DNA of 64,000 nt from the NCBI GenBank assembly GCA_038087875.1, contig JAXLNO010004592.1:186001-250000 (forward strand). Direction: 5' to 3'. The notes below the pieces were generated by a model, which saw only the letters and a list, made by a program, of their open reading frames with translations, was not told where the DNA came from and searched no databases. The stretch comes from Malacoraja senta (Eukaryota). The position numbers were made by a program, and so were the translations under genes. Positions 10,757 to 38,698 of the stretch are shown one piece after another; the stretch's first letter is position 1; every line of letters begins with the position of its first letter.

Positions 10757-11109
10757 ATTCAAAATGCAAACAGATGAAACCCCCAAGTTCCAATCTTCCC
10801 TCAAAGACAATTGTGACAACTGCACAGTTAAGAGGTTTTCGCAAAGTACAATACCTCAGTCCCTTCATTTATGGCCTCATCAAAAGCAGTTGCTGTTTCA
10901 AAATGTCTCGCCTGCATTGGAAGCTGCTCCCAGGCTTCTCATGCCTGAGGATCATACACTAAAGAAAAGGAGGAGAGTGTTTTCTAGCCCAGAGGTAGCA
11001 AGAGAATTTGCACTTCACCTGCTGTATTTTGCAGTTTTTGCTGTAGGTGTACTGGGTTTACTTCACTGGCATGGCATGATACAGCTATTCCAAGGAAAAA
11101 GTTGCAAAG
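10757..11109 (+). CDS. Exon encoding the cytoplasmic tail and transmembrane helix of a type II membrane protein (putative N-terminus of the CEMIP2-like gene)
   Basis: Acceptor cattttcag|, ATG at 10764, donor AAG|GTAAGC (phase 1). Encodes KKRRR (10962-10976) followed by hydrophobic FALHLLYFAVFAVGVLGLL (11007-11063). Confidence 0.7.
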
Positions 11110-14100
11110 GTAAGCTAGACAGCATTAAAACTACTAAAATAGAAGGGAATATAGATACGGTATGGAAAGATGGTGAACATAAGTAGTGAGAGGTGCCATG
11201 AAACCAAAAGGAAAGAATAAAAGTAAATAGTACAATAGACTCAGATCTGTGAGAAATTTCAAACTTGACAGAAGATAAAAAGGATAACAGGTTCATTACA
11301 CACAGATGGATGGGAAATTACAAAGAAAATAGAGCAGCAGCAGAACATGACAGTAGAAAATGACAGTAAATTTGGCATCCCAGGAAACTAATAAAACAAA
11401 ATCAAAGACTGGAATCAACTAAGTTCAAGTGAGATAGCAGATGGTACAGGAAAAATAATGGCACTTAATGACTTACAAATCCACAGTTCTTGGGGGGAAA
11501 AAAGCTGTAGTATTCCATATTGTCTTGGTTCAGGAATTAGCTCTTATGATTGGAAAACAACAAACATTTACTTAAAGAAAAATCTGATTGTTTTAACATA
11601 ATGGATTGTGCAGGATCTGTTAAAATATGTAATAATGCATAACATTGAGGGATCTGGTTCAGGGTAGGTCCAGCTGGACTGATTGGATTTTCTTTTGGGA
11701 AGGGGGGAATTAATGTAGAAGATTGTATTGTTTATGGATACAGTTTATACACTTGAAGGCTTTCAATAAGGTTCAATATGATAAACTTTGGAATAATAAA
11801 AACCCACAGACTGAGGTGAAGCTATTGACCTCAGTGGAAATTTAGTTAGAAAGTAAAAGGCAGAAATTATTAATAATTGATATGTACAAGTATTTTGAAA
11901 AAACCTTTGGTGTCCCTTAAGTTTCTGTGCTGGTGAAATAAATGTGTATCAATGAATTAGATTATGCAACAGAGACCATGTAGGGACAATCTTTTGTATT
12001 GCTGCACAATGTTTAATGATGTTCCTTTGAACAATTTGAAATGTTTTAATGCATTACGATATAATACAAATACAAGTTGCTGCTGTTATGAATATTTCTT
12101 GTAAATCTGTCCTGCACAATTTCCCAGGATATTGCCACTGCTCCAAGTTATATTATAAAGTCAAATTATATAAACTAGCCTTGTATTTCCTGTACAGTCA
12201 AAGATTAATGGGTGATTTGAACCAGATTTGAAGGATTTGGAAAGGAATTGTTAAGGAGGACAAAGCAAATCCTTTTCTGCTAGTCGGGAGTTCAAGGATG
12301 AAGGAATATTAGTTTTAACTAGAAGGCAGGCCGCTTGGGAAGTAGTTCTTCATATTGCAAGTAATAGAAGGGTGGAGTATTTGCCCACAAAACATTATCT
12401 CTATTAATAATTTTAAATCTGAGGTTTCTAATTCCAGCTCAGGATATTGACTGATATAAAATCAAGACAAGTAGATGGAGTTAGGGCACCGATCCTACAT
12501 AATCTCATAAAACGTTGCAGAATGTCTTATCCCATTTTTAAAAATATATATATTTAAATAGTCTATTCCACGTTTTTAGGAGGAAATTCCATCTCAGTGG
12601 GCTCCAGAAAAAAACATGCATTATCCATCTATAAAATTAAATTGTTTTCTTCCTGCTATTATATGTAAGACTGCACTATTGATTTAATTTCCATCTACTA
12701 CAGGTGGCAACCTGGCACCAGTTGTCTTAACCTGAAGAGAACTCTAAACTGGAAAATCACTGACCTCTAGAAAGCCAGAAGCACCTGAATGCCTTCAAGC
12801 TGTGGGAATTATTAGGTGCTCTTATTGTGTCTTCCAGATGTTGATAGAGACATGCAAACCCAACTTGTAAAAGCAGTTTGTTTTGTTGCTTTGTATTGGG
12901 CACAGGCCAAAGGGCGTACTACAACAGCTGGGAGCACATTGTGTGCTCAGTGTAAAGTTTTAGTCGCTGTCTCCGTTGGAGAGTCACCCACCCTAATTAA
13001 TAGCAACGCATGAAAAGGCAACATTTCAGCAAATAAACTGCTGCATCATTATTTATCTTCAAGCTATTTGCATGGGGTTAGTTAGTTAGTATACTGATTA
13101 GCAGGTTGCTTATGCAGCTGCCTATATGCAAAACAGCTGAAACGAAAATCGAAAACTAATATTCCAAATGTGATAACAAAACCCTTGATTATAACGCAGA
13201 GTACACCAACTTCCTGTTGCCTCTTCAACATGATTTCAAATTCCAGTGGAAACAAAAACAAGAATGAATATTAGTAGCAACATAAAATCGGCCTACATTG
13301 TACAAAGCAAGAGAGGTGTTTTTTAATTGAGGCAGGTGGTAGATATGTAGGAAGTGAATTTGAGCTAAGAACATTGAAGAATTATATAACATGGCAGGGT
13401 ATTGCATGGATGTTCCACTGGAGATCTTGACAGAAGAGATGGAAAGTAGACTTGCCATTATATCCTCAGGGAATTAAGGAGGTCCATGCTTGAAGTTCGT
13501 GTGCTCAAGAGTTTGTGTGTGGTGTTGGAAGAAGCTCCTTGGTTTCACGCCCTGTAAGTGCTCCTTCTGGTACATTTTCTTACCACGAGCACCATCTGCC
13601 TCAGATGCCACTCAGTGCATACGTCCGATCACTCAGCTCCCAACAACCTACATTAATCAGGACTTGAATGTTGGATTGCATCTTCATGCTTAGAGGATAG
13701 CAGAAAAATAAAAATGACATATGATGGGACATTAAGCAACCATCGCTTAAGTCAGGCCAAGAGGAAAGAGAAAAACTTAAGGGAGAGGTTCAACACCGTT
13801 CTGTTGCAAAGAGCAACAGGTTCTGTTGCAAAGAGCTCATCTGAAGCAATCTAAGGAAGATGCACAATGAATGCATAGTTAGCAAGCATGCTCGAGATCT
13901 CCAAAATGGAGTGTACAACTAGCTATATTGCAGAGTCTAACCTCTGTTGATTTAGACTTTATTGCAACACAGATAGCAGCCATAAAGGAATAAAGAATAG
14001 CACCAATAGGAATAACAAAGTCATACAGAAGGGAGGCCATATCATTCCTCCAAGCCTGTCCAGCATTCACTTAGATCAAGTATTAGTTGCACAAACCAAC

Positions 14101-16979
14101 TTTTGCCACCTCAGCCTTTAGGCCCTCATATCTTAAAATATAGGCCTGTGCATTCTAATTCTAAAGCTGTAAAGACAAACCCACTAATTGATATTTCTTT
14201 CCTGTCCGTGTTATTTTTATGATCTAATAAAATGAGATCACTATAGTTCTCATAGTTCTTTCACCATAGTTCTTTAGATATGTAAGACGCCACTAGAACA
14301 CTTTCCTCCTGAGGATAGTGGATTGGCCCTTATCCTATTTGTGTTCTTGATACTTACTAACTTTTCACCATTTTTGAGGTACTCTATTCTACTTAGGTAC
14401 AAAAACATGCGCCTTGTCAAGATTGCAATCCATTTGTTGCCATTTTTCTCGTTTCCTTAATCTATTAATATCAATTTAATTCATTGCTTCTACCTAAACC
14501 GCCCTTAATGGCGTGTATTGTGGTGGCGTAGGTATTTTCCGATGCAACATACATTTTGTGACATCTGAAAATTTATGGAGATGTGGCTTTCCACTCCTTC
14601 ATCCATGTATCAACAGATTTTGGGAGTAGTTGTGGTTCCAACGTAGATCCCTGTTGGATCTACTTACATTCTGCCATTTGGATCCCATGTCCTGATGACA
14701 GTATGCCATCCTCGTTGTAATAAATGTTGATGTAACATTTTCATGATTTTTTTTTAATTTTTTATATGTTTTCAAGGAATCCTGCTTTGCTTCTGACTTT
14801 TCCTAATGTTATAAAAAATATTGATGTTCTTCTTTTTTCAAGCTTTTACTGTTCCGTGGCCATTTATTGTTCTTGCAATCTATCCTAGTTGACAGGTTCT
14901 GGGTGTTGGTTCTTGTATTGAAAGATACATTTTCTTTTAATGTCATGTTTAGCTCTTAGTCATAGACTACAAATTAGTTGCCAACTGAAACTCTTTCCTC
15001 CTGAGGAAACTACACTGGCACTTATCCCATTAAATTCCTTTATGAATACTTCATACTGGTCTTTGTCTTTTTTTCCCATTACAACTTATTGCAAACCGTC
15101 AATGTGTCAGTATTGAAGTGGGCTTGTCTAAGTCTAGAATACTTCATGGCTGTTTTTTCCATTTTTATTTTAATTACTATATTGATCTTGAATATACAAC
15201 TACTTTTAAATAAATATCCATGCACTTTCAGGCTGTTAATGAAATCTGATATATAGCTCATTACTAATATATCCAGCTATGTTGTCAGCTGTAGGAATGT
15301 TTTTGTTGCTGACCACTATCATGATAATTCTTGAGAAATTTACTTCCTTCCTGATAGGGTTTAACTGCATCTGTATGGAAGTTGAAATCCTACTGCTAAT
15401 GAATTACTCCACCCTTGTTACACATTTATCTAATCTTAGAATTTGAGTTTTACGTCTTCAAATGCTACCAAAACAATACACAGTTCCCATCAGCATTTAA
15501 AATTATTTTCTATTTCATAATTCTACTTGTAAGGCTTCCAACTTACCACGGTAACTAGCTTTCCAATTAATTAGTAATTTTATCATTGACCTCACAATCT
15601 CCTCTTCTGGGAATTAGATTTTATTTTGTGCGTCCACCTCTCAAAATCCTGCACCATTTTTCTTTCAGGCATTCTAAAAAGGAAACCCGCAAATACTTGC
15701 ATGTTCTCAATGTCTCAACTCACACTGAACTGCACATAGGACTGTCATTGCCAAATGACTCAAAATGAGCCTCATCTCCATTGACAAGCATGCATGCATA
15801 ATTGTCGGTACATTTTTGTGTAATGCTCAGAAAACACTCATTCAAGGCCAATTGAAGTTCTTGTATTCAAATCTCATTTAAATATATGTTAATAAATAAT
15901 TTATGTTTAATGGTTATTAATTTTCACTTCACAGTTGCAGCCTCACAGTCCATTTCTCAAACTTGCTCTGCAAGTTAGATCTTTACCCTTGCTCCAAATC
16001 ATAGACTATGTATATTGACAAGTACACTTTGTGAAACATTTTCTCAATGCACTGACCTGCCTCTCTCTCCAAGTCTACCACCATCAACATCCTAGGGGGT
16101 CACCATTGATTAGAAAATCTGCTGGGCCAGGCACCCAAGTACTGTGGCTACAAGAAAAGGCCAAATGCTGGGTTGATTTTGGCACCCTAATGCTTTCCAC
16201 CATCTTATTCTTTCCACCATAAACAAAGCGCGTCTGAAGCATAATAAAATGCTCTCCAATTGCCCGGATGAGTGATGTTCTAGCGATACTTGAGATGCTG
16301 TCCAGGACAAAGCAGGTCACTTGACTGGTGCTTATCAACCAACCTAACTATTTATTCTCTCCACCACTTCCAAACATTTTTGTAGTGTTGTGGCCCTCGA
16401 ATGCATTGCAGGTGCGTGCCTGGATTATTTCAACAGAGCCTTCCAAACCTATGAACTCTACCATCAAGAAGGACAAAGCCAATAGCCATGTCACACACAA
16501 TTCACTCAGTATTACTCTTGCCTGTCTCGTGCTGCTGTAAGAATGAAAAGTAGTGCAGCTTCAAATTTCTACAAATGCTTTGTAACATTGTCTACCTAAG
16601 ATAATCCTAATAATTAAGATGAATTCTGGGGCGACTGCCTCTTGGTGTTTAAACACAAACTACATCTTAACTTGTTCCTGTATCCAATGATTTCCTCAAT
16701 GTAATTTTTTTAAATTCTGATTTTGGGGACTGGGCACTGTTGGCAAAGCCATCATTTATTGTCCTTCCTTGATTGCTCATTGAGGTGGTGATGAACCACC
16801 ATCAACTTAGTGGTTTGCTGGGCTGTTTCAAGTGGCATTTAAGAGTCAACCACAAGCAGTGATTGAAGTCATATATTGCCCAGATCAGCTAATCCTGGCA
16901 CATTTCATCTCCTGAAGGACGTTTATGAAACTATAGGTTGTTATGACGTCAATAATTCTTATCAATGTTGAGGGGGGTT

Positions 16980-17680
16980 ATTGGAGGGGATTTGGAGAGA
17001 CAGGATCTATCTGCATTTGGAAAAGCAAGGACAAATTAGGGATAGTCAACATGGCTTTGCACATGGGAACTTGTGTCTCATGAATTTGATTGAGGTTTTG
17101 AGGGAGGTTACCAAGAAAATTGACAAGGGTGGAGCTGTAGACGTTGACTACATGGACATTAGCAGGGTTTTTTACAATGCCCTGTATGGTAGGCCAGACT
17201 GGAAGGTGAGAACTCATGGGATCCAGGAATGAGTCGGTACATTGCATACAAAATTAGCTTGGGGGAAGGAGTCGGATGGTGACAGTGGTGGATTGTTTTT
17301 CAGATTGAAAAGGCTTGTGACCAATGGTGTGCCACAGGAACGGTGCTGCATCCCCTGTTTTGTCATATACATTAACAATATAAATGCCTTGATGGTAACT
17401 TTGCGAATGGCACCAAGATTGGTGGTGCGATGGACACTGAGAAAATTGTCTAAGATTATAACGGATCTAGATCAACTGGGAAAGTGTGTAAAGGAATGGC
17501 AGATGGAAATTAACTCAAATTAGTGTGAATTAATGCATTTTGGTAAGTAAAGCAAAACGGGAGTAAAAAACAGGGCCTTGGGGAGAGTCGTAAAACAGAG
17601 AGACCTAGATGCACAGATACATAGTTGCCTGAAAGTGAGAACAAGATAGATAAGGTGGTGAAAAGGGCAATAATGCCTTT
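16980..17680 (+). mobile_element. CR1 LINE reverse transcriptase remnant
   Basis: SQHGF..G..CL.NLIE, VDV.YMD and GVPQ motifs, with frameshifts. Confidence 0.85.
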
Positions 17681-18774
17681 ATCTGTTTAATGGTTTACAT
17701 GGAAGCAAAATTCTTAAATTCTCATATTTCTTTGTTACAAAAAAGGGGAAAATGTGATTCAAAAGTGAAACAAAAGGCTTCCATTTTATAGCATCTTCAC
17801 CACCTGGGATGTCCTAAATGACGTATCTAACAAGATACTTTTTGAAGGTCTGTCATAATCTTGATGAAGGAACGCAATGGCCTCTGTAACTCTACACCAG
17901 CACGATGGACACCTGATCTCCTTAAGGCAACCAAGGATGGTCAAATATATTATCTTGTCAAAAATGTAAAATGCTAATAACAAATTAAGTTCTCTTGTCT
18001 GAACACTTCATAATGGGCAAAAGCAGTGGTGAGGGTGGGTGTACCCAATCCCACTCCTTCAGGGACTGGCTTGTGGTGGATAACAAATCTTCCTTAAATC
18101 TCTCTAAAGTTCCCAACTTTTACTTCAGGTAATGTATAAGTCTGCCAAGGGTAAACGTTTCTTACTAATCTAATCTATGCTCCTCAGCTTTGTTTCTCAA
18201 TCAGATCTCTTCTCAGTCTTCTTCATACTGAGGCAAACATTCCCAGCCTTTCCAGTCTCTCCTGTTAGCTGAAACACTCCACCTCAGCCACATACTGGCA
18301 AAAATCCTTTTTCACCCTCGCTAGTGTAATCGCAACCTTTCCATAGTTGTGCCAGCCAAAACTGCATAAAGTATTCCAGCTGGGGTCCAACTAATGTACT
18401 GTCAATCTGATAAAATTATTAATCCAGGACCCCAACTACTTTCTCGAGTGAACATGAAATGTTCTATAGTATCATTTTGAAAGTGAAATAAAAAAATTCC
18501 TCAGTGTCCATGTCAATATTCATGTCTCGGTAAATTCGTAAATCAGATTATGTGCAAATTATGGTGGTGCTTATATACATCAAAACAAAATACTGAGCTG
18601 TGACTTTGTGTTTTGGGACATCTTGATACTGACAAAGGTGTGATCATAAATTCTGTCTTCATTGCATTTTAGAATATATAATAATAATAAACAGACGAGT
18701 ATAAGTATTCATTAAGAGTTACAACCCATGTAATTTTTTTTTTTTAATCTGAATATTTAATTTCTGTTCTTCAG

Positions 18775-19260
18775 ATGGTGATCAACAAATTCAAAGCACT
18801 CATTGGAAGTTGTCATACTTCACAACCAACTCATCTGACATATACCCACTGCACAAACGATTTGTACGGAGCACAATACCAAAGAAAGACAAACAGGAGA
18901 AAAGTTTGCTGACTATCTACCAGAGAATGACAGAAGTAAAAGAAATACTACTGCAATGCGAATCTCTTGTTAAAGTGACCAATTATGTTCTGAGAGAAGC
19001 TTTGGGGAAAACTTTGGAGTTCTACCCACTTCCAACCTGTGATCAGAGGCTGAATAATCAGATTACCAAAGTTGATCCACTCATTCTTGTTAGGGTTAAG
19101 ATAAAACCACAGTTACTTTACCAAGTCTTACACTTCCTGAAAGAGCTAGACTGGCTGGTGGATGCTCATCTAGCAAAAGCGTTCTACACTGTGAAAAAGC
19201 TAATGGTTTTTAAGCAAGAAATGATATTGGGAAAGACAAGTAAAACCAATAATGAACATG
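18775..19260 (+). CDS. 486-nt symmetric (phase 1-1) exon: luminal stalk with NSS sequon, furin-type KRFVR/S site and predicted helical domain
   Basis: Strong acceptor tttctgttcttcag|, donor ATG|GTATGT, 162 codons with no stop, phase matches exon 10757-11109. Confidence 0.72.
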
Positions 19261-20337: not shown

Positions 20338-21733
20338 GTAGGAAAGAACTGCAGATGCTGGTTTAAATCGAAGGTAGACACAGAATGCTAGAGTAACTCA
20401 GCGGGTCAGGCAGCATCTCTGGAGAGAAGGAATGGGTGATGTTTTGGGTCGAGACCCTTCTTCAGACTGATGTCAGGGGAGTGGGCGGGACAGAGATAGA
20501 ATGTAGTCGGAGACAGGACTGGTGGGAGAACTAGGAAGGGGGAGGGGATGGAGACAGATGGAACGCAAGGGCATTTGAAGTTAAATAAGTCAATGTTCAT
20601 ACCGCTGGGGTGTAAGCTACCCAAGCAAAATATGAGGTGCTGTTCCTCCAATTTGTGCTGGGCCTCACTCTGACAATGGAGGAGACCCAGAGCAGAAAGG
20701 TCAGATTGGGAATGGGAGGGGGAGTTAAAGTACTGAGCAACAGGGAGATCAGGTAGGTTGAGGCGGACCGAGCGGCGGTGTTCAGCGAAACGATCGCCGA
20801 GCCTGCGCTTGGTCTCACCAATATACTGATGTTGATACCTGGAACAGCGGATGCAGTAGATGAGGTTGGAAGAGGTGCAGATGAACCTCTGCCTCACCTG
20901 AGCAGACTGTCGGCGCCCTTGGATGGAGTCGAGGGTGGAGGCAAAGGGACAGGTGTTGCATCTCCTGCAGTTGCAGGGGAAAGTACCTGGGGAGGGGGTG
21001 GGAAGGGACGAGTTGACCAGGGAGTTGCGGAGGGAACGGTCTCTGCGGAAAGCGGAAAGGGGTGGAGATGGGAAGATGTGGCCAGTAGTGGGACCATGTT
21101 GGAGGTGGCGAAAGTGTTGGAGGACATCTCCAATGATCTAGTATGGAAAACCCTAAAGAATGAGGAAATCTCTGATGATCTAGTATGGGAAACATCGGAG
21201 ATGTCCTAATTCTTTAGGAAACGCAGGTTCCCCACCCATTATAGATGAGGCTCTCACTAGGGCCTCCTCGATATCCCACAGCTCCGCTCTTGCTCCCCCC
21301 GCCCACATTCGCAACAAGGACAGAGCGCCCCTTGTCCTCACCTTCCACCCCATCAGCCGTCGCATACAGCACATAATCCTCCAACACTTTCACCATCTCC
21401 AACGGGATCCCACTATTGGCCACATCTTCCCATCTCCATTGTCAGAGGTCCAGTGCATATTGGAGGAACATCACCTCATATTTCGCTTGGGTCGCTTACA
21501 CCCCAGCGGTATGAACATTGACTTCTAACTTCAAATATCCCTTGCTTTGCCTCCCTCTCCATCCTCTCCCCATCCCATTTCTCCCACCAGTCTTACTGTC
21601 TCCGACTACATTCTATCTCTGTCCAGCCCACTGACCTGACAGTCTGAAGAAGGGTCTCAACCCGAAACATCACCCATTCCTTCTCTCCAGAGATGCTGCC
21701 TGACCCGCTGAGTAACTCCAGCATTTTGTGTCT
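20338..21733. mobile_element. Penelope-like retroelement insertion with inverted arms (GIY-YIG endonuclease remnant on - strand, 20406-20897)
   Basis: FICTSSNLIYCIRC...YIGETKRRLGDRFAEH is the GIY-YIG motif of Penelope-like elements. The right arm (about 21200-21733) is the same family on +. Flanked by the 16-bp direct repeat accacctgtagattgt (20322-20337, 21734-21749). Confidence 0.85.
21644..21671 (+). ncRNA. Minimal hammerhead-ribozyme-like core in Penelope arm
   Basis: CTGAAGA-A-GGGTctcaACCC-GAAA-CATC, on the same strand as the element ORF. Confidence 0.5.
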
Positions 21734-24050: not shown

Positions 24051-25490
24051 TACTCATTACAATGTTTTGCACTCACTGCCCCAGTATTGTTTCTTTCTTT
24101 TTCTCTTTGTCTTCATTTATCGCCATCTATCTGTTGTGGACCTTTATTGTAGGATGCAGCTTGATAGAGGAGCTTTGTTCAAAATATGTTTGGTGTTAGG
24201 TCCATTCTCTCATATGTTTCAGTGAATAGGTCATCAACAACTTGGAGTGTGTCCTCAGAACATGCGCATACACTAGTGCTGACTGCACACAACAGCTCAA
24301 CAGCTCAAATAAATTCAAGGAAAACAAGTCAAGTTTGCACAACCAGTTTTCAATGCTGGTATCATTTTAGTGAATCTGCACTGTAAACTCTGCAAACCCA
24401 ATATATCTCACTAGCCAAGATCAAGTGCAGTATTCTACTATCAAAATGCTTAGGTTTTGTCACATTGTACCATTGTCTCATTGTCCCAGTCATGTCAAGG
24501 TGAATCCATCAAGGCAGTTCTACTGAGGCAATGTGTAATTCATGTATATCAGGAATCATATCAGTCTTAGGTGAGTCAAACACACAGAAAATGCCTCAGA
24601 GTAATTTAGTCAAAAAGATTTGGAAAAATCTTTTTGACCTCCGAAGGTAGTTTAATAAAACTCCATGAGGCATATGTATTGAATTTCAACATCTACAAAT
24701 CCACATACCTCTCAAACTGGAAATGTTCTTGATTCTTATGGGTTTACCTTTAAAGGGCTAAAGTGCCTGACATCTTAAGTGAAGGGCTTAACTTAAGGTC
24801 AGAGGAAAGGTCCAGAACTGAAAAGTCATCTATCTATTCCTACACGTGCTGCCTAACCCGCTGAGTCCTCCAGCATTTATTTTTTCCTTAAGTGAATCTT
24901 TGTTTAACATATATTTTAGTAGTGCATTCAAAGGATCAATATTAAAATCTAAATAAATCTTAACCTTTTTATTTCAAAGTTACCTCCTTACAATTAATAC
25001 CAAATGATCTTTCAGTCAGAAAAAAAATCGGTGCTCTTTATCATTTAAAAAATATCAAGTGGAACTCCTCATTCTACCCTTTTCCGTTGAAAAAAAATGA
25101 TTTCCGGAGTCTGATAGCTTAAGACTTTGATCATTTCTTGACCTTCTCCAAGGCCTCAATTTCTGTCGTCCATCAAAGTGAGTAAAATTGAGATACATTT
25201 CTAACATCTGCTGTGAGGATCTGAACAGCAAACTTCTGTCTTCAAGGTTTATTCCTCATATCATGGCTTACACACAGCGACATTCATTGCATGGTCATAG
25301 CACCTCTGGGTTCATCATTGGCTAATCATACTGTCTGATAGAATGTCACCTGAAATTCTTAAAGTTAAATGTTTTAATTGTACGCATCCCATTCACTAAA
25401 TCCATTTGTGTATGCTATTTTTCTAGATGATTTGTCAGAATGTCCCATGCTTTTCCATGTTATGTCTATCCATTTGCTTTGTTTTTATAG

Positions 25491-25538
25491 TCTTAAAATG
25501 GCTGAAAAGGAACAGGACCCACAGAAAGTCCTTTAAAG
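25491..25538 (+). CDS. 48-nt symmetric (phase 1-1) basic exon VLKWLKRNRTHRKSFK; read-through of its donor gives a terminal exon ending at stop 25591
   Basis: Acceptor tttgtttttatag|, donor AAG|GTAGAG, open in the phase-1 frame. AATAAA at 25745 and 25774. Confidence 0.5.
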
Positions 25539-26427
25539 GTAGAGTTCGGCCAAGACCCTTACTTGGACCAGACTGTGTTATATGTTGTTAGTGCATGGCA
25601 ACTCCAGTGTATAACGATCATTTCACTTGCTCAAACATCTTGGGTACAATCCAATTCTTCCCATTTGTTTCGTGCTCCATTCTGTTGCACTGACAGGACT
25701 TGGCACTGAGTAGGTCAATGAGTTTCGTGATACTATTTATCCCGAATAAATAGATTTTGTTGGACAAATCCTGAATAAATTATACACTAATCTCAAAGTA
25801 TTGCCATTCTTGACAGAAAAATTGTTTTGAGTTGTGTTGGACATGATGTTTGATATATGAATAATATAGATAGGACACGAGATGAAATTCATTCAGACTG
25901 GCACCAAGCCATAGGGTTCCTTTATTAATGAGAAAAAGGAGGACTTTTTTAAAATAATAAAATCATCAAAAAGCACAAACAATAAATTATATTTAGTAGG
26001 TGGCCATTCATAGAGAATGACACACATAAATTTACTTTAAAAAGAGGAAATTCCACCCTATCATAAGATAAGCTTGGGTGTACTGATGATGTTTAAAAGG
26101 TGATCGAAAGTTAGTAACATAAAATCACTTGAGGTAGAATACCTGTCATTTTAATGTGTGTTACATGGGCTGTTAAAAAAAGATGTCATGTTGAATCACT
26201 CTGTTAAAATCAAAAGAAAGATAGCCAACTGATTATTTAGTTTATGCAAAACACAAGGTGCTCGAGGAACTGAGTAGGTGAGGCAGCATCTGGGGAGGGA
26301 ATGGATTGGCAGTGTTTTAGATCAAGACCCTTCAGCCAAGACCCGAAACATCACGTCTATTCCCTCCCCAGATGCTGCCTGACCCTCAGAGGTCCTCCAG
26401 CATTTTGTGTTTAGCTCAAGATTCCAT

Positions 26428-26460
<33 letters not shown>
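26428..26460. repeat. (TAAG)n microsatellite
   Basis: Eight tandem TAAG units. Confidence 0.9.
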
Positions 26461-26834: not shown

Positions 26835-27185
26835 CGTATAAGACCATGAGAGGAATAGATAAGGTAGATGACAGTGTCTTTTACCCAGGGTGGGAGAATC
26901 AAGACCAGAGAACATAGGATTAAAGTGAGGGGGAAAACAATTTAAAAGGAACTTAAAGGGCAACTTTTTAACACAAAATGTAGTGGATATATGGAACGAG
27001 CTTCCAAAGGAGATAGTTGAGGCAGGTACTATCATAACGTTTAGAAGATATTTGGACAGGTATATCGATAGGATAGGTATAGAAGGATATGGGTCAAATG
27101 CAGGCAGGTGGGACTACCATAGATGGGGCATCTTGGTTGGCATGGGCAAGATAGACTAAAGGGCCTGTTTCTGTGCTCCATTACT
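26835..27185 (+). mobile_element. CR1 LINE 3' end
   Basis: Homologous to the reverse complement of 9250-9645. Confidence 0.8.
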
Positions 27186-30100
27186 TAGACTGTGCATTCA
27201 TGTCTTACTTAAAACATTTCAATATATAATTTAAACCGTTAATAAATTGGCAATATTAGCAATACCGGCCATACTGCTAAGAAATTTAAATTATTTTAAA
27301 CACTGCCCTCGACATGTCCAATTCAGTGTTGGTCGGCATGGGGAAGTTAGGCTGAAGGACCTGTTTCCATGCCGTATGACTCCATGACTCTATGACTTGA
27401 TAAAAAAAAAAGAAATCATTTGTCCTCTATGTTTTCAAAATAAAAAATATTTGTTATATTTCATGAGGTCATTATACCTGCTAAAATAAGTATAGTTATT
27501 GAAAGGCAGTGGATATATCAGTGTAAAACTCACTGTTTGCAACCAAGCTGTAAAGGCTGACTGCTATTTCCAGCCCAATGGAACCAGAGTTAGATGGCAA
27601 TTGGGATTCCACTTATTAAGTGAAAATTGTATATTCTCGTAATTTATGAATCCATTAATAGCCACTTTTAACTTCGTAATGTTTACAATGATGATGAATG
27701 AACAGTTCTTTGTTTTGGTCGTGTCTTCAAACTATATTCAAAATAGATAGTTAGTCATTGCGTTATAAAAGAGAATCAGTTCTTAATGTTAGGAGATTCC
27801 CTCACCAGAACAAGACATAACTATGTAGTGATAAACTTATTTTGCACGTGTCCTACTGTAAACATATCAATTTCACTGGAAAGTCTATTGATATTAGCAA
27901 TGAATGATCTGTGGCATCTACTTACTTTTGCTCAGTCAGAATGTTGAATTCATGTCTCACTCCTGAGACCTGAGCAAATGATTAAGAGTGATGCTTCTAC
28001 ACATGACTAAGAAAGTACTACACAGCCGAAGATGCCACTTTTAAATGAGATGTTTAACTGGGGCTATCTGTATATCCATTGACACCAAACTGTGTCACTC
28101 CTTTTCTGTGAATTCTCCTTGTACATTGTTTAATTTTACTTCAAAACCAACATCACTCAAATTTCTTGTTTTACTGTTTGTGCAAGGTTGTAGTATGCAG
28201 ATCAACATAAAATGGCTGTGAAGCTATTGGGCATTCTGAATGGATGAAAGCCACATATTAAATGCAAATTTTTTTTTGCTATTGTTTATGTGAGGAGTTT
28301 GAATTAATCTCTGAGAGCAGTTTTAATTAGTCTGAATTTTTAACCTTTTACACTTTTTAAGTATTTACTAATCAATATTGATTAGATAATGTAGCAATGA
28401 AAAATAGTAATCTAAAATGGGACATACAAGCTGATTGAAAATAATACTATGTTTTAATTTGTAAACATTTCCCATAACATCACATTGCTTTCTGTGAATA
28501 TGTTGTGCTCAAAATATTTTCTGCCTATTCAAAAAATAGAAGATTGTGCCCCCTGGTTTCCAGAGTTACTCATTTGTTGTCATGGACAAGATGGTATCTA
28601 TTTAAAGTTACTAGCAATCTCATACATTTCAAATTTAGCCAAAGAGATTAAACAATGTTCTTCACAATCATTTTAAACCTTTACTTCTGTCTAATATTCC
28701 CACAGCTAGTGTTTCTATTTAATATTTATCATCTCCTGTGGAGCATATTTATTATCTACTTTAATTTCAGTGAAAACAAGAACAAGGAATAATGCTGTTG
28801 TTTTCAATTTCAGTTTTTTTCCCCTAGCATTTGCATTTTTTTAATTTTCTACAAATATCAGGTGGTTTAAGACACATTGAAGAATTTTCATATACACGCT
28901 AAGGATATCTGTGAAGGCATAACGTTCAGTAATTACTGCTCAGCCTGCCTGACTGTGCCAGGATTGTGAGGAATAGCTGTCAGATTTAAAGTGTTTCTGG
29001 TAAACCACAAACTTGCTCAAAATGACTACCAAGCAGGCAGAAGGCAGCTTGCAGTTAGAAATGAGGATACTACACTGGAAAAGTAATAGAATGAAAGAAC
29101 AGACTTGCATTTATAAAGCACCTTTCCCATCAGTGCTAATTGAAACACTGCTTAGCTAATAAACAGTACGTGCCACTCAGTAGTTTAGTGGTGTAATGGT
29201 TACGTTACTGGACTAATCTATTTAAGCAATTTGAAAATGCTGTATGGAATTTGGTACTAAAAAGCTGGTTTTCTGTGAAAGTGACCACAAAACCACTGTC
29301 ATAAAATCATAATTGGCTTACTAATGACTTAACCTGGTATATGAATGCAGCCCTGACTAATGCAAGCCACGGGTTGTATCAATAACAATGAACTAAAAAT
29401 GTTGGCACATTCTGAAAATGAATTTAAAAAAAATACAGGTAAGAACTAATTTATACTCAAAATGATCAATATTTCACCTTTATTCATAAAGCTAATGTTT
29501 CTATTGAACATAATAGAATATGTGGGCACATTTGTTATCTGGTTCTATAATTAGTGAAATTAAGATCACAGAGTAATCACTGGGGGAAAGAATGGCTGTT
29601 GGTTTGATTGAGAATCACAATGTGACATTAATACAACAGTGACAGCTGGAAAATCTTCATTTATAGCAACATTTCAGCATGTTAGATGTAATAAATGTAA
29701 AAAATGATTCAGCATTTTTATCCACATCATATAATAATTATAGGGCTGTTTGTGAGCCGTGTTAAAGCCATCCGGTATTCCCGATAGAAATTCTCCACAC
29801 TTCTTCCCAATTTCAGTCCTCCTCATAGAATCCCAACTTTGCACTACTCAGCTCAAGAGTCCTGTTCAACATCACATCCCAAATCTTCTGCTGTAAAAAT
29901 CATCAGCCATGCCTTTTGACACCTGCAATTCAGTTTTGCTGGCCTGAGTACCACAGAATAGAAACTCAATCCTCATCAATCAAGTTTCGCTCACCCAGCA
30001 GCTGTTCCCACCAGCTCGCTCCTTGTTTCCTTTTCTATTTCAATCAAAATCCTCATTCATGACCAACTTCCCTTTTGAGATAAATAAAGTTCTATCGTAT

Positions 30101-30429
30101 CGTATGGCCTTGTTCTGCCCAACTCGTTTACATTCTAGCAGACACATGCATTCATTCACTGGTTATGGGTATTGCGGCCGAGACAAATGTTTAAGGCCAG
30201 TTGGCAGGAAGTCAGGGGACCTCCTCTTGCACCTTCTATCAGGCCGAGCTGTAACAACTGTTTGTAGATCCCTTGACGAGGTGAGAAAGTGGATGTGGTG
30301 CCTGGCCCACTTCCTTGGTCTACTGGTATGTTTCAACCTTCTGTAACTTTGATGAATTGGTATGTGCTTAGGTTGGAGCACAATGCTGAGATATTAGTTT
30401 GACTGGAATATCCATTAATTGCAACATGA

Positions 30430-30745
30430 GGGCAGTAGAGTGAGATAGCAGGAAGTGCAACTGCCCTCACAGTTACAGCAACCTGGGATTGACCCTGACC
30501 TCTGCTGCTGTCTGCGTGGAATTTACATATACCTCTTCTGTTTCTAGTTTCTCCCACATCCCAGAAACTTTCTGGTTCGTAGGTTAATTGGCCCCTGTAG
30601 ATTGCCCCTGGAGTAGGTTGGTGGTAAGATATTGAGGTGATGACTCAATGAACATCTGGAAAGATTGCAGTGAAATAAATAGGGTCTTTGGGTTATTTCG
30701 TAACATGGCATAGACTTGATAGATGAATGTCCTCCTGTGTCATAA
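30430..30745 (+). mobile_element. Degenerate tRNA-derived SINE
   Basis: Contains the gtaggttaattggcccctgtagattgcccc core shared with the other SINE copies. Confidence 0.6.
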
Positions 30746-31749
30746 AGAAGGTTAGTGTATTTCTTTTTAGCGGTGATTTGAAATGAGTATGGATTGTGAT
30801 GATTTTCTTTTTGCTGGTCTGGGGCAACACAGAAGCATCGTTTCAGACCTGCATGAGTGCAAATGTACAGCACTTCTTCATCACGGCTGGTTCATTTTTC
30901 AAATAGCCCTGGTATCTCTTCCCTATCACTAGAGACCTTCTGGGATAACTTCACCCTTCCTCTCCATCTCCGACTATGCCATCGTTTACCATTTGGAATC
31001 TGAATTTTTACTACTCTCGTAAAGTTCCCTGAAATGTTTTTTTTTCTAATTTAAGTATTGTTTAGAATGTTATTGGAAAATAGGTGTCCGTTAATTGGAG
31101 AGTATTTAGATTTTAGTTTTGACTTTCAATTGGTTAATATAGATTTTGTGTGAATCGGAATGTTGTCTACAAATTCATATGCCTATATGGATCACGATAA
31201 TTCATATTGATGATATAATGCATTAGCTCTGCAATTGAGAATTAGTTAAGGATAATAAAAGGTAAATGAAAGCAATTGGAGATGTTCAAGTAAGCTGCAA
31301 GTAGAAGAAACAGCAATGAAACTTGTGATTGCTAACATTCTGTTAGAGATTTAGGAACATTGGTATAATGTGTGTTGAGTTACAGATTTATACATTGCCA
31401 AATTAAAACACGTCCTTAGTTCCAATATAAACTCTCATCAGAAGTAGACTACAATGAAGGGAAATGTGTTGTGTTAGAAACCACCCATTCTATGATGTTT
31501 ATTCTTTGTAACCCTTGTACTCCCTGGTGAGATTTGTAAATTATTTCTTGTTTCCTTTAAAATGCTCAAGGAATAAAATGTAATCCACAATGTGTAAAGG
31601 GACCCATAAATGGAATAATGACAAATTCTAGGGCTATAGGTCAACATTCCTTCACTGAACAGTGGGTGAAACAGCAGCTGATGTGCACCATGTGCCCAGA
31701 GGTGAAATCTGTTCAATCTGTGCCAATGCATTGAGTGCCAATGAGATTC

Positions 31750-32310
31750 TCTGAGAGTGAAGAAGAGACAAAAGAAAAGGGAAGGACAAGAAAAAGAGAG
31801 TTGAGGAAGGTTTACTAGGGAAAGAAGAAGTGAGACCTCATGAACCTCATGAGGGGAGGTGACGAAAGAAAGGGATGGGAAGCAGAGAGAGGGCAAGGCA
31901 GGGTGAGGTGAGATTGAGGGATGTAGAAATGAAAGGGAAAAGTGAAACCAGTAGGATGTGACCACTGAAGGGAAAGGAAGAAGGGGAATGAGGAAGTGAT
32001 GTGGGCTGAATAACAAAGGGGGGAGGAAAGGTAGCTAATTGGACAGGGAGTTTGATGGAGGAGTGTGAAGGACTGAGTAGGTAAGAAACGGTGTGGAGGG
32101 CAGGAAGAATTAGGACAAGAAAAGGACAAAGAGTTTGAAAAAAGAGCAATGGAAAGAGTGGGAGTGAAGGATTGGGGGAAGAAAGGAGAGCTGCTAGTAA
32201 GGAGGAGTGAAGAATAGAGAATGCTCAGATTATAGGAAGAAGAGGAAGGGAGAGAAGTGAGAATAGCTGAGAGAATAATAGAGGGAGGGAGGGTGAGGGC
32301 AAAGCATGAA
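31750..32310. repeat. Polypurine (GA-rich) low-complexity tract
   Basis: Directly visible purine skew. Confidence 0.8.
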
Positions 32311-32334
32311 CATAGGTAGATCATTCATCTTAGA

Positions 32335-33600
32335 GTTATAGAGTCATACAGTCTGGAAACAGACCTTTCAGCTGAACTTGCCCATGGCGACCAACATACC
32401 CCGTTTAATCTAGCCCCACCTGCCTGCTTTTGGCCCTATCCCTCTAAACCCATCTTCTCGAACTTGCTTGCATTCAATAAGATCTTGGCTGATCTTTTAC
32501 TTCAGCACCACTTTTGGAATATAAAACAGTACAGCACAAGAACAGGCCCCTAGGTCCACAATGTCTGTACTGAACATGATGCCAAGACCAACTCTTAGCA
32601 GCCTGCACGTAATCCATATCCCTCCATTACCTGCATATCCATGTGCCTATCCAAAAGTCTCTTAAATGCCACTATCGTATCTGCCTCAACCACCACTCCA
32701 GGAATTCACCACCGTCTTTGTAAAAAGACTTGCGCCACACATCTTCTTTAAACTTTGCCCCTCTCACCTTAAAGCTATGCCCACTAGTATTTGATTTTTC
32801 CATCCTGGGAAAAAGATTCTTATTATCTATCCTATCTGTGCCTCTCATATGTCCCCATGCAACCTCTGGCATTACCCCCTAATCCAAGGCATCATTTTGG
32901 TAAACCACCTCTCAAGAGTCAAGTCAAGAGAGTTTTATTGTCATGTGTCCCAGATAGGACAATGAAATTCTTGCTTGCTGCAGCACAACAGAATATGTAA
33001 ACATAATACAGAACAGGAGATAAAAGTTCAGTGTGTCTATATACCATACCATATATATATACAATAAATAAACAGATAAAGTGCAATAGTAATAATAGAC
33101 TTATTGTTCAGAGCTTGTTTGATGTTGTGTTCAATAGCCTGATGGCTGTGGGGAAGAAGGTGTTCCTGAACCTGGATGTTCCAGATATTCACTCTTTCCA
33201 AAGCCTCCACATCCTTCCTGATCAGAACTGGATGCAATACTCCAAATGCAGCCTAATCAACGTCCTATAAAGCTGTATTATGCCTTCCTGGCTCTTGTAC
33301 TCAATGCCCTGAGCTATGAAAACAAGCATACCATATGCCTGCTTTACCACTCTATCTACTTGTGTTGCCACTTGCAGGGAGTTGTTGACTTGGACCCCAT
33401 TATCCCTCTGTACTTCAATGCCATTAATTGTATATTTCCACACATCACATTTACTCTAATTGAATTCCATCCACCACAATCCTCTGTCTTCCATCAGTAA
33501 GCCATTTCTGAACCCATATGACCAAGTCATTGTTAATCACATCCACCTTAATCTTCTGGGTCAGCCTACCATGGGGGACTTTATTCATATGCTGTACTAA
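32335..33600 (-). mobile_element. Cluster of CR1 fragments with a nested Rex/Babar-type LINE 3' end (~32914-33185)
   Basis: CR1 motifs (LEYCIQF, KVPHGRL). The - strand at ~33130-33180 encodes TSRFRNTFFPTAIRLLN, typical of Rex1/Babar-like ORF ends. Confidence 0.72.
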
Positions 33601-34861
33601 CCCATACCCCTTGACTCTCTCGTCCAAATTGGCACAGATTAGGTGGGCCAGAGGACATTTTTCCATTCTTTCTGACTCCAAGAATCCAAGCCTCCACACA
33701 CCTGGCCCCAGCACCAACCCCTGTGGCACTCCGTTAGGTTCAGTCTCCAAACCTAGCCCAATAACTAATCTCCAATCAGCAGTATATTACCAGAGTATCA
33801 CATTCTCCAATAAAATCTTATGAACATTTGAATACTGCACAACCACGGGTTTATACTTATGCAATTTTGTTAACTACAATCTCAAATCTGATTTCCCTTT
33901 CATAAATTGAGGTTGACTGCTGAATCTTATAATTACTTTCAATGTGCCCTTCTATCGCTTCCATAATAATAGATTCCTACATTTGCTCTGCAACCAATGT
34001 CAGGCTAGCTGGTCTTAAACTGGAAGTTGACAATCAATACATCCAATATCTCCACTGCCAGGTTTTACCAAACCTTGAAATGTAAGTCGTGAGTCCCGGG
34101 ATTTATCGACTTTACGTTCCATTAATACTTCCATACATTTTTAGTGTTTTACTGCCTTAAATGGAAATGTGTTTGTTGTAATCTATGTATTCATTCTCTA
34201 AATATCATATTGGTTGTCTACTGTCAGGCATTTTTAAAGTAGATTTTCAACTTATCAGAACCACAAGTGCCTCATGCATTCATATTTGGTTTTGTTTAGT
34301 TTTAAGATCTGGGTTGCAATAGAATTAATTCACTTGCAAACTTTTTTAGGTAATATAATCATTCTTCTTTTTACCCACGTTATTAGTTAGCACATTGAAT
34401 TTAAAATAGCCTGTTCTCTAATTGGTTCCACAACATAGAAATCTAAAAATCCCATCTTATATGGATACTGTGAATACATCCTCCACCCTACTGCTGCTAA
34501 TTTGGTTTTCATGGTATATGCGTAGGTTGAAGTCCACCATGGTTATTGCATTACAATTGCAACATGGAGTGAGGATGAGGGAGACGGTGACAGTGTGACA
34601 TTGAATACGAAGATTGGGGAGGGAAAAGGATCAATGATCTGAGGTTAATGAGATGCAACAAATGGGTTAACTGGAATTAAATGGTGAGAGGTTGTGGTAA
34701 GATAAGAATGAATGAGGTAGAATGAGATGGAACAGCATTTGGCACAACATTTAATGCTGGTGCCTCAATGCTGCAGGGACTTGAGATATATGCTGACCTC
34801 GGGTGATTTCTACAGGAAGTTTGCACATTCTCCCTGTGACCACACGTTTCAGACTAGTGTT

Positions 34862-35043
34862 AAAGAAGGAACTGCAGATGCTGGAAAATCGAAGGTACAC
34901 AAAAATGCTGGAGAAACTCAGCGGGTGCAGCAGCATCTATGGAGCGAAGGAAATGGGTAACGTTTCGGGCCGAAACGTTACCTATTTCCTTCGCTCCATA
35001 GATGCTGCTGCACCCGCTGAGTTTCTCCAGCATTTTTGTGTAC
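34862..35043. mobile_element. Palindromic Penelope-derived mini element with 15-bp target-site duplication
   Basis: Near-perfect inverted arms of about 74 bp (34895-35043). TSD tttcagactagtgtt at 34847-34861 and 35044-35058. Confidence 0.8.
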
Positions 35044-35099
35044 TTTCAGACTAGTGTTGTGTGCTGAAATGTTAATTGTCTTTTGTAAATTATTCTTAT

Positions 35100-35925
35100 T
35101 GGAGGCAAGTAGCGAGGGGAGAGATAATGAGAAGGAGATGGGGTGAGGAGGGAAGGGCTAAAGAGGAGTGTGGGTGTGGTGCAGGTGAGGAGGAGTGAGA
35201 GGGGGCATGAGGTGAGGGTGTAATGGTGATGAAAAGGAGCGGTGCGATAAGGATGTGGAGTGGATGGGTGCGAGAGCTGTGGGGGTAAAGTGATGAGGAG
35301 GGGTGTGGTGGAGGTGAGCGGTGTGCAGGAGGTGAGGGGTGTGGAGGGAGGGTGAGAAGTGTGCCGGAGGAGAGGGGAGTGGGGGAGGTGAGGGCTGTGG
35401 TGCAGATGAGGGGTGTGAGGAGGAGGAGGTGATGGGTGTGGAGAGGAGGTGAGGTGCAGGGGTGAGGGGTGTGGATGGGGAGATGAGGAGTGGTGAGGGG
35501 TGTGGAGAGGAGGTGAGGTGCAGGGGTGTGGATGGGGAGTGTGGAGGAGGTGTGATGGGTGTGATGGATGTGAGGGGTGTGGAGAGGGAGTGAGGGGTAT
35601 GGAGAGGAGGTGAGGTGCAGAGGTGAGGGGTGTGGATGGGGAGATGAGGAGTGGTGAGGGGTGTGGAGAGGAGGTGAGGTGCAGGGGTGTGGATGGGGAG
35701 TGTGGAGGAGGTGTGATGGGTGTGATGGATGTGGGGTGTGGAGAGGGAGTGAGGGGTATGGAGAGGAGGTGAGGGGTGTGGATGGGGAGATGAGGAGGTG
35801 AGGGTGTGGAGAGGGAGTGAAGGGTATGGAGAGGAGGTGAGGGGTGTGGATGGGGAGATGAGGAGGTGAGGGTGTGGAGAGGGAGTGAAGGGTATGGAGA
35901 GGGGCGTGAAGGATGTGGTGGTGTT
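35100..35925. repeat. G-rich low-complexity tandem repeat (gaggggtgtggagaggaggt-like units with higher-order duplications)
   Basis: Directly visible; almost no C on the + strand. Confidence 0.9.
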
Positions 35926-35984
35926 GAGCTGGGATGGGGCGGCCGGTTGGGTTCCCCCTCGGCGGGCGCTCGCTGTCACAGAGG

Positions 35985-36075
35985 GCGGACCGAGCCAATG
36001 AGCACCGGGAGGCGGGGCGGCAGCGCGGTGTCGCCGGGCGAGGTGAGCGGCCAGCGAGCTGGGTATAAATAGAGC
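35985..36075 (+). promoter_or_regulatory. Pol II core promoter: GC boxes, CCAAT box (~35995), TATA box (TATAAATA 36064-36071) in a CpG island
   Basis: gggcgg, gagccaatga, ggcggggc and gggtataaatag appear in canonical order and spacing, followed by a GC-rich leader that ends at a CAG|GTGCGC donor (36268). Confidence 0.75.
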
Positions 36076-36094
36076 TGTGACTGCCGGCTGCGGG

Positions 36095-36268
36095 CAGTCG
36101 GCGGCGAGCGGCGGCGGCGCTGGGACAGACTGACTGACTGACACTCACCAGCCCACCGGCAGACAGCGATCACAGCTTCTCAATCCGCGGCAGACAGACA
36201 GACAGACAGACGGACATCAGCGGCCGGAGCCTGGGAAACGCACTCTGGCTGCTCCCAACTTGCTACAG
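36095..36268 (+). other. Probable non-coding first exon of the internally initiated CEMIP2-like transcript
   Basis: Begins about 25-30 nt after the TATA box, has no ATG, contains (CTGA)n and (CAGA)n microsatellites, and ends at ctacag|gtgcgc. Confidence 0.5.
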
Positions 36269-36596
36269 GTGCGCACTACCCGGGTGGGTGTTGCGGTGAG
36301 CGGGTGGTGGGGACCAGGTTGGCAGAGGGTGTTCTGCGTGGCGGGAGTGTGTGGGGGCAGTCCTGGTACAGGGAGCTGTGCTGACTGTAGTACGTGCCAA
36401 ACAGTTTCTGATTTCTAGGCTTCTAGTTTGTATTTTGTGCTGCCTTCTCCATTGTGATTCTCCATCAACCACCCGCCTGGCCCCTCTACTATAATAAGTA
36501 TGGATTATCTATCAATAATCCATGGCAAACCTGCCCCTCTTCCGAGAGACGTTGACAGCCTGAAACTAGGATTAAACACAAAGCATCAGCGGCTGG

Positions 36597-36642
36597 ATGA
36601 GCCGGAGCCCATTTGTGCACTGCACACTGGTTTATACAACAG
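36597..36642 (+). CDS. Candidate start exon segment for the short isoform: MSRSPFVHCTLVYTT
   Basis: The only nearby ATG that reaches the CAG|GTGTGT donor in phase 1, matching acceptor 36731 across an 88-nt intron. Confidence 0.35.
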
Positions 36643-36730
36643 GTGTGTAACTTTCTTGTTATCAACATTTGAACACTATATATTAAGAATTTGCAACCAC
36701 ATGTGATAGTGAATGAGAATTCTCTCTTAG

Positions 36731-36871
36731 TGGATTGCCCAGATAAGGCCCCATATTTATTACCCTGGAACCCTGGACATCATGAAAATAAGAAGGTTAA
36801 GATTGGACGGAGAATGTTCCTAAAACTGGAGTCTTCTGCCTCGCTACATTCCATTATTATAGAGAACGGGG
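36731..36871 (+). CDS. CEMIP2/TMEM2-like hyaluronidase family protein, exon (start of G8 domain)
   Basis: tctctcttag| VDCPDKAPYLLPWNPGH...SSASLHSIIIENG |gtaagt; matches the CPD..WNPG start of the G8 domain in the CEMIP family. Confidence 0.92.
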
Positions 36872-38534: not shown

Positions 38535-38698
38535 GCAACCATGGGCTGCGATTGGAGTTCTTGGTGAATTGTTTGCTATGGAAGACAAACAACTGTATCA
38601 GCCTAATGGGTCAACTGGTATGGCTATAGTAAGAAGAGACTTTCAGACATATGATGGGATTCATTTCACAGTCACTGCTTTCAGTGAGTGGGTGAGAG
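38535..38698 (+). CDS. CEMIP2-like exon (end of GG domain)
   Basis: tttag| RQPWAAIGV...DGIHFTVTAFSEWVR |gtaagt; phases 2 in and 1 out are consistent. Confidence 0.92.

Follow-up and report, generated by a model that had tools for sequence, protein, structure and literature searches.

A CEMIP2-like gene of skates places a conserved stalk with a candidate processing motif between a predicted membrane anchor and its G8 ectodomain

We analyzed 64,000 nucleotides (nt) of the skate Malacoraja senta (assembly GCA_038087875.1, contig JAXLNO010004592.1, positions 186,001 to 250,000 of the forward strand; hereafter the window, numbered from its first letter), which contain the 5' part of a gene related to the hyaluronidase family of CEMIP and CEMIP2/TMEM2. 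Exons upstream of the first G8 exon encode a predicted membrane anchor and a stalk, and an earlier note on this DNA had treated them as orphans that might splice in frame onto the G8 part. They are not orphans but annotated 5' exons of the gene across non-mammalian jawed vertebrates, including RefSeq models of ten cartilaginous fishes. Judged by gene identity and protein architecture, they very probably form the canonical 5' coding part of the skate orthologue of ‘cell surface hyaluronidase-like / CEMIP2-like’. This gene model is already known; what is new is the reading of its stalk and of the basic motif that the stalk carries.

Four exons form the chain in question: a transmembrane (TM) exon, a 486-nt stalk exon, a 48-nt microexon and the first G8 exon (Table 1). 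Translation reproduces the phases, splice sites and open frames claimed for them, and when they are joined the frame stays open throughout. The hydrophobic helix predicted in the TM exon is present as well, although it is 21 amino acids (aa) long rather than 19, and the cytoplasmic tail encoded ahead of it has 81 aa. The stalk of about 180 aa proposed between helix and G8 domain measures 193 residues between W102 and C296 with the microexon and 177 without it, and the two R-x-x-R motifs attributed to it, KRFVR/S and RTHR/K, lie in the stalk exon and the microexon, respectively. A scan of 26-36.73 kb (ATG...GT) for a hydrophobic phase-1 exon with a plausible donor returned poor candidates only, and none was accepted as a signal-peptide or TM exon near the G8 exon, in agreement with the earlier note.

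Transcripts from related skates (RNA runs of organisms A-C, 95-99% identical to the window) connect these exons. A 3314-nt contig of run X6 places its positions 199-553 on 10755-11109 and its positions 1039-1179 on 36730-36870; beyond 11109, its loose end reads the opening 30 nt of the 486-nt exon, and its 1038 nt ahead of 36730 have no match within 33000-38900. By these positions, the stretch that separates the TM and G8 exons is exactly 486 nt long. The contig therefore reads from a 5' exon (...SNCRREFIGP, 8780-8838) through the TM and 486-nt exons to the G8 exon, skipping the microexon, with a uniform depth of 12.8 over the upstream and G8 parts. Because this chain joins the upstream exons to G8, upstream transcripts do reach 36731, as had been proposed. 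A 1084-nt contig of run X5 covers 10755-11109 exactly and runs on into the 486-nt exon, and the skate Logan contig L008 gives the same junction letter by letter (...GTTGCAAAG/ATGGTGATC). The loose ends before 10755 in the X6 and X5 contigs read ...AGTAACTGCCGTAGGGAATTTATTGGACCA.

Further downstream, the joints 36871 to 37147 and 37705 to 38535 occur in four RNA runs (compared over 33000-38900). No contig aligned to the TM exon joins it directly to G8. Downstream contigs of runs X2 and X5 start exactly at 36729/30, and other RNA contigs end at 36640-36642 plus 24-31 nt, which together is the signature of several alternative exons meeting one acceptor. The microexon is alternatively spliced: it is skipped in the run X6 contig and in RefSeq isoforms X3 of Leucoraja and Amblyraja, and is present in RefSeq isoforms of Amblyraja, Leucoraja, Rhinoraja, Hypanus, Pristis, Heptranchias and Pristiophorus, with a peptide nearly identical from skates through sixgill-type and saw sharks. 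Its inclusion in run X1 is not proven, as it follows from length arithmetic only (561 = 30 + 483 + 48) and the TM exon was not placed for that run. As to a short isoform that would end near 25.8 kb, the RNA runs, which are from other species, contain only 5-12% of the sampled words of 25400-25800, a share that the microexon by itself could account for.

Annotation of other species agrees. The Amblyraja radiata model XP_032906156.1 (isoform X2) matches the window exon for exon, including the 5' exon at 8780 and the microexon at 100% (tblastn); protein identity to this orthologue is 92.6% for the 486-nt exon and 100% for the 48-nt exon. RefSeq models in more than 30 species join the upstream exons to G8, and the chain is common to the models of ten cartilaginous fishes, which have isoforms both with and without the microexon. 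A full-length search returned at least 120 clusters named ‘cell surface hyaluronidase-like / CEMIP2-like’, with matches in birds, crocodilians, turtles, squamates, amphibians, coelacanth, gar, sturgeon, bichir, bowfin, eel and ten cartilaginous fishes; we found the gene from chimaera to birds, and no mammal is among the best 120 matches. At the DNA level, the 486-nt exon is 97.9-98.1% identical among close skates and its flanks are 92.4-93.4% identical. Judged by its protein identity to Amblyraja, the excess of exon over flank DNA identity and a core recognisable as far as birds, the exon chain is far beyond chance.

The claim that this architecture is undescribed stands only in part. The RefSeq models (XP_032906156.1; Leucoraja erinacea XP_055517167.1-XP_055517173.1; Ambystoma XP_069480267.1) already contain the same exon chain, microexon, alternative 5' exons and internal-promoter isoform. 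They are automatic predictions in which the stalk has no assigned domain, motif or function, and some bird and turtle annotation splits anchor and stalk off as an ‘uncharacterized LOC’ gene. In the literature searched we found no paper on the CEMIP2-like paralogue, nor any on its stalk domain or conserved basic motif.

The ectodomain is that of the TMEM2 family. The G8 domain (PF10162) scores 85.7 bits against a cut-off of 22.9 over 37149-37703, with the CPD...WNPG start at 36736; ILEI (PF15711) scores 65.7 bits in exon 37147-37705, and the beta-helix family (PF24606, CEMIP_beta-hel) scores 94.9 and 77.9 bits in exons 45202-45420 and 47070-47276. The gene extends past the window, which stops at about residue 1006 of 1583; in the C-terminal region beyond it, the Amblyraja orthologue matches CEMIP_X with 220 bits. 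That orthologue (P0128) aligns to the human TMEM2 structure 8c6i with 1629 bits over residues 312-1578, starting exactly at CP(D/H). Equivalents of TMEM2 R265, D273 and D286, whose mutation lowers TMEM2 activity (PMC10206443), are kept in SRGINIRVID...RFDTH. The intrinsic hyaluronidase activity of TMEM2 is disputed (PMC10206443 versus PMC10474455; see also PMC12423501), and because of this dispute we treat the description of the skate protein as a hyaluronan-degrading enzyme as an argument from homology.

Comparison with the two known relatives sets the skate gene apart in its N-terminal half. Like CEMIP2/TMEM2, it would encode a type II protein with a cytoplasmic tail, a basic cluster before a single anchor and a G8/lectin-like/beta-helix ectodomain. 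In TMEM2, however, the CPD motif follows about 10-20 residues after the anchor, and a soluble construct starts at residue 106 (PMC10206443), whereas here G8 does not follow directly and 177-193 residues are inserted, with a two-Cys helical domain and basic motifs. CEMIP (KIAA1199/HYBID) shares the ectodomain family but has a cleavable signal peptide directly before CPD in one exon, without tail, anchor or stalk; no such signal peptide was found near 36.7 kb of the skate gene.

The stalk exon encodes a disordered linker of about 40 aa followed by a helical domain of about 100 aa with two invariant cysteines. In a 40-sequence alignment from chimaera to birds, C61 and C88 (exon numbering) are invariant and the core reads KP.LL..VL.FL...QQ.KAF..LKK. 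AlphaFold2 run on this alignment leaves residues 1-39 disordered and places helices at 44-53, 61-76, 101-105, 111-123 and 129-156, with a core pLDDT of 70-92, a mean pLDDT of 69 and a pTM of 0.61. Searched with phmmer against 1.84 billion representatives, the exon peptide has nine matches, all from this locus: two are full-length CEMIP2-like proteins (a Podargus bird and axolotl), matched in the segment just N-terminal of G8, and the rest are short ‘uncharacterized LOC’ proteins or open reading frames (ORFs). We found no relative elsewhere: no Pfam family matches, Foldseek gives no PDB entry with E < 0.001, the best AlphaFold DB cluster match has TM 0.38 and E 0.38, protein-atlas matches score at most 0.77, within the chance range, and a profile search for proteins of 89-282 aa recovers only LOC models and Logan ORFs of the same locus. 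The TMEM2 structure 8c6i aligns from the CP(D/H) motif onward only and leaves the stalk uncovered.

How the stalk is held at the membrane may differ between lineages. By sequence rules, the skate protein has the features of TMEM2-type anchoring, namely its 81-aa tail, KKRRR and an uncharged run of 21-25 aa with 6 K/R before it versus 2 after. Cartilaginous fishes in general have an N-terminal region of 80-100 aa and an uncharged run of 17-25 aa, with 4-6 K/R in the 15 aa before it versus 1-3 after, which indicates a type II anchor. Birds have an N-terminal region of 25-31 aa, a hydrophobic run of 13-17 aa and then RPGAQA/TS, and in gar and sturgeon WQGSQA follows the hydrophobic run; both sequences look like signal-peptidase sites. 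If this is true, the mature bird protein would be a secreted stalk plus ectodomain, and a soluble form in cartilaginous fishes, by any route, becomes more credible.

The basic motif lies within the disordered linker (exon residues 1-39, pLDDT < 50), on the predicted luminal side. In 11 of 11 cartilaginous fishes examined, a count inflated by the relatedness of the species, [KR]R..R stands 32-33 residues before the first cysteine, the linker motif reads Y-P-L-[YH]-[KR]-R-x-[AV]-R-[SN], and an N-x-S/T site is present in most. Seven of nine anuran species scanned have KRS[TMR]R[EQN] or RR.TR at a similar distance (a tenth has no detectable core), sturgeon has RREARR and ratites RERR/S. Canonical R-x-[KR]-R occurs in some orthologues, such as Bombina (KRSRR) and Rhea (RERR). 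Many other sauropsids have (G/E)RR[RS]L in the motif region, a sequence closer to an S1P-type than to a furin site. Because the motif is conserved and predicted to be exposed, KRxxR is plausible as a processing site.

We propose, tentatively, that the conserved motif is a Golgi or cell-surface proprotein convertase site that releases stalk and ectodomain, a possibility we rate as real though short of probable. CEMIP2-like would sit at the cell surface as TMEM2 does, with the stalk holding the ectodomain off the membrane. From the N-terminus, the protein consists of a cytoplasmic tail (about 80-100 aa, including a basic cluster), a predicted signal-anchor of 21-25 aa, a disordered, glycosylatable linker of about 40 aa with [KR]-R-x-x-R/S, the two-Cys helical domain of about 100 aa and an optional basic 16-aa microexon peptide ahead of the G8/lectin-like/beta-helix ectodomain. 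A convertase cut at the conserved basic motif would then set stalk and ectodomain free. In some isoforms the R-x-x-R of the microexon could act as a second such site, placed between stalk and G8, which seems unlikely to us. Ectodysplasin A, BAFF and the transmembrane collagens XIII, XXIII and XXV are furin-type type II substrates with canonical R-x-[KR]-R sites and demonstrated cleavage. Their layout is similar, with the anchor at the N-terminus, a basic motif in a flexible linker next to the membrane and the functional ectodomain at the C-terminus; unlike them, the skate protein has R-x-x-R only.

Several observations weigh against release at this motif, or against parts of the account on which it builds. 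The skate sites K-R-F-V-R/S and R-T-H-R/K are minimal R-x-x-R sites only; with V or A at P2, the motif of cartilaginous fishes does not match the canonical furin consensus R-x-[KR]-R. Several birds, as well as Xenopus, salamanders and gar, have a weak motif or none. Stalk codons of close skates differ by 7 non-synonymous versus 2-3 synonymous changes (small numbers), and because the former outnumber the latter, constraint on the protein sequence of the stalk is modest. We infer that CEMIP2-like is distinct from CEMIP2 proper from the ‘-like’ naming and from the location of human CEMIP2, which adjoins ABHD17B. Finally, the runs found for the window's own species are DNA only (organism D, word share 0.89-1.00), and the RNA contigs from the related skates are assemblies, not single molecules.

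The strongest alternative, with a chance that we put only a little short of even, is that anchor and stalk are permanent. The motif could then serve in sorting or in contact with a glycosaminoglycan or a partner, the protein would act as a tethered enzyme or receptor, and the two-Cys domain would provide spacing, oligomerisation or regulation. TMEM2 itself works at the cell surface as a type II protein (PMC10206443, PMC12423501), the skate motifs are minimal ones, and the maintenance of the stalk domain from chimaera to birds suggests that it is more than a linker to be discarded. A permanent tether does not, however, readily account for the exact position of the motif in all 11 cartilaginous fishes within an otherwise variable disordered stretch. 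Moreover, birds seem to have swapped the anchor for an N-terminus resembling a signal peptide, so that a soluble form looks tolerated or even favoured.

A further explanation is that soluble and tethered forms arise mainly from alternative promoters and 3' ends, namely a promoter at about 36.0 kb, a start at 25427 and TM-stalk transcripts that read through donors 19260 or 25538. We consider it doubtful as the main route. RNA contigs do end at donor 36642 and run 24-31 nt beyond it (run X5, 36239-36640 plus 31 nt; run X1, 36354-36642 plus 24 nt), and Amblyraja RefSeq isoform X6 (P0173) uses the internal promoter, starts MMSRSPFVHRTLVYTTVDCPH and reads MMSRSPFVHRTLVYTT/VDCPH. Yet the only in-frame proximal start there, ATG 36597, gives MSRSPFVHCTLVYTT/VDCPD without anchor or signal peptide, and because it has no signal peptide the product would not be secreted. 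The start at 25427 opens an ORF (25427-25538) that runs from the intron into the microexon (MICQNVPCFSMLCLSICFVFI/VLKWLK..., then VLKWLKRNRTHRKSFK); an in-frame TAG directly precedes its ATG, and the ORF matches the N-terminus of Hypanus sabinus isoform X2 (P0192, MNMMICPNASCFSMLCLSICFVFT/VLKWLK). Its basic residues follow the hydrophobic run, however, and by the positive-inside rule the enzyme would face the cytosol. In the same stretch, TGC occurs some 15 nt ahead of the 3' splice site, and the conservation of the stretch may reflect control of microexon splicing rather than coding.

Early 3' ends would fit several observations. Contig L008 continues past the 486-nt exon for 442 nt of intron (...NNEH and then intron), AATAAA signals lie near 25.75 kb, and stand-alone LOC models of turtles and birds (P0002, P0008, P0009, P0147, P0148, P0154; 258-283 aa) consist of anchor and stalk and read through the stalk donor (...KQSG/MYLRRMH...). 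But intronic contigs also occur at 11110-11249, and the read-through contigs may likewise be pre-mRNA. Short anchor-plus-stalk products, perhaps conserved ones, may exist, or the contigs and models may represent pre-mRNA. A last explanation, that the upstream exons are a separate small membrane-protein gene and the G8 junction a rare read-through or an assembly chimera, is highly improbable: NCBI does list anchor-plus-stalk LOC genes in some birds and turtles and a promoter does lie directly upstream of the G8 exon, but all phases match, the G8 exon lacks a secretion signal of its own, the run X6 contig at its even depth and the RefSeq models noted above join the parts, and duck has the same three-exon layout.

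The gene belongs to a tandem group. In duck (Anas acuta OZ009975.1, 1-73204), an ABHD17 gene ending ...HELPNS, CEMIP2-like and a 1360-aa G8/beta-helix protein follow one another on one strand within 73 kb. Duck CEMIP2-like has an anchor exon, a 504-nt stalk exon and a G8 exon, as in skate, and the third gene, CEMIP, has its signal peptide and CPD in one exon at about 72907-73203. In the window, too, an ABHD17 last exon lies upstream; its label as the C paralogue rests on the human C-terminus, ...HELPNS. CEMIP2-like adjoins ABHD17C and CEMIP. In duck, CEMIP is its immediate tandem neighbour on the same strand, and a fused 2814-aa catshark model implies that CEMIP and CEMIP2-like are adjacent in catshark as well. 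Shark CEMIP exists as separate 1353-aa proteins with a signal peptide directly before CPD (MMMMHLLYNIGWLLALNLPALFAA/CPDQ...), and their identity to the CEMIP2-like protein of the same species is only 44-51%. Alignment with human TMEM2 8c6i, a weak proxy for a tree, gives 1629 bits for skate CEMIP2-like (P0128) versus 1195 bits for catshark CEMIP (P0202). By the separate CEMIP genes of shark and duck, the low identity and these scores, CEMIP2-like is distinct from CEMIP and closer to TMEM2.

This arrangement allows a broader hypothesis, which we regard as speculative and improbable as a whole. CEMIP2-like would be the ancestral-type anchored tandem partner, and secreted CEMIP would have arisen when its portion from the G8 exon onward was duplicated; the internal promoter just upstream of G8 in skate illustrates the kind of intermediate that could permit such a step. 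The gene would still switch between tethered and soluble hyaluronan-processing forms, by cleavage at KRxxR, by the second site of the microexon and by promoter choice, and the helical stalk with its two cysteines would act as a regulatory module of a new kind, similar to a prodomain.

Table 1. Positions of the CEMIP2-like gene parts and of the neighbouring gene in the window
Feature	Position	Strand	Details
TM exon	10757-11109 (353 nt)	+	AG before, GT after; ATG 10764; ends in phase 1; from translation
KKRRR basic cluster	10962-10976 (aa 67-71)	+	within TM exon
Signal-anchor, 21-25 aa	11007-11069	+	within TM exon; hydrophobic run FALHLLYFAVFAVGVLGLLHW, aa 82-102
Stalk exon	18775-19260 (486 nt, 162 codons)	+	AG/GT flanks; phase 1-1; one open frame only
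N-x-S site in linker	18828-18836	+	stalk exon
KRFVR/S motif	18855-18872	+	stalk exon
Two invariant Cys codons	18957 and 19038	+	helical domain of stalk
48-nt microexon	25491-25538	+	AG/GT flanks; phase 1-1; one open frame only; codes (V)LKWLKRNRTHRKSFK
RTHR/K motif	25514-25528	+	microexon
First G8 exon	36731-36871	+	phase-1 acceptor; V-D-C-P-D start; VDCPDKAPYLLPWNPG...
Rest of G8 and first GG/ILEI lectin-like domain	37147-37705	+	Pfam G8, ILEI; alignment to 8c6i
Later CEMIP2-like exons (beta-helix, others)	38535-61585	+	tblastn with Amblyraja orthologue (P0128); to about residue 1006 of 1583
Alternative 5' exon, coding part	8780-8838	+	MKNTNHTIKSNCRREFIGP; donor GT 8839; tblastn Amblyraja X2 100%; 5' end further upstream
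Internal promoter and exon	35985-36642	+	CCAAT ~35995, TATAAATA ~36064 (promoter ~35.99-36.07 kb); donor CAG/GT, phase 1
Last coding exon of ABHD17C, upstream neighbour	2969-3232	+	ORF; 91% identical to duck ABHD17 last exon

A second alternative 5' exon, at 7844-8099, is used in contig L008 and in isoform X1 of Leucoraja and Amblyraja (MPRGFCFGSSCNQRQQKRRKER). In the window GA instead of GT follows it and its ATG at 8033 is out of frame, and we did not count it as part of the gene here; it may be disabled in the window species, or this may be an assembly difference.

The window also contains several repeats. A G-rich minisatellite at 35100-35900 (units such as GGTGAGGGGTGTGGAGAGGAGGTGAGGTGCAGG) lies directly upstream of the internal promoter, with a GC skew of 0.53 over 34-36 kb. 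In the RNA contig sets, a near-perfect palindromic interspersed repeat at 34773-35060 (...GCTGGAGAAACTCAGCGGGTGCAGCAGCATCTATGGAGCGAAGGAAATGGGTAACGTTTCGGGCCGAAACGTTACC...) has word depths that sum to about 20,000-270,000, and it dominates the joints and loose ends found over 33000-38900. Intronic transposon remnants lie at 20409-21137 (minus strand) and 16972-17520; one ORF has a GIY-YIG-like motif (...YIGETKRRLGDRFAEH...), typical of Penelope-like elements, and others are reverse-transcriptase-like fragments. A short repeat family (...FFTQRVV..WN.LP.E.VEAGT...) occurs at about 9.4, 27.0, 46.0 and 59.9 kb.

Reviews of hyaluronan turnover name two G8-type proteins only, CEMIP and CEMIP2/TMEM2 (PMC11275217, PMC12423501). 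The ABHD17C-CEMIP locus of non-mammalian jawed vertebrates holds a further one, with a TMEM2-like anchor and a conserved stalk without known relative. It could compensate for the loss of cemip or cemip2 in hyaluronan studies of chicken, Xenopus, axolotl and fish. It is also a natural test of tethering, stalk length or proteolytic release as controls of activity, and so bears on the dispute over the activity of TMEM2. Across the family, CEMIP2-like could show a route from a tethered to a secreted enzyme.

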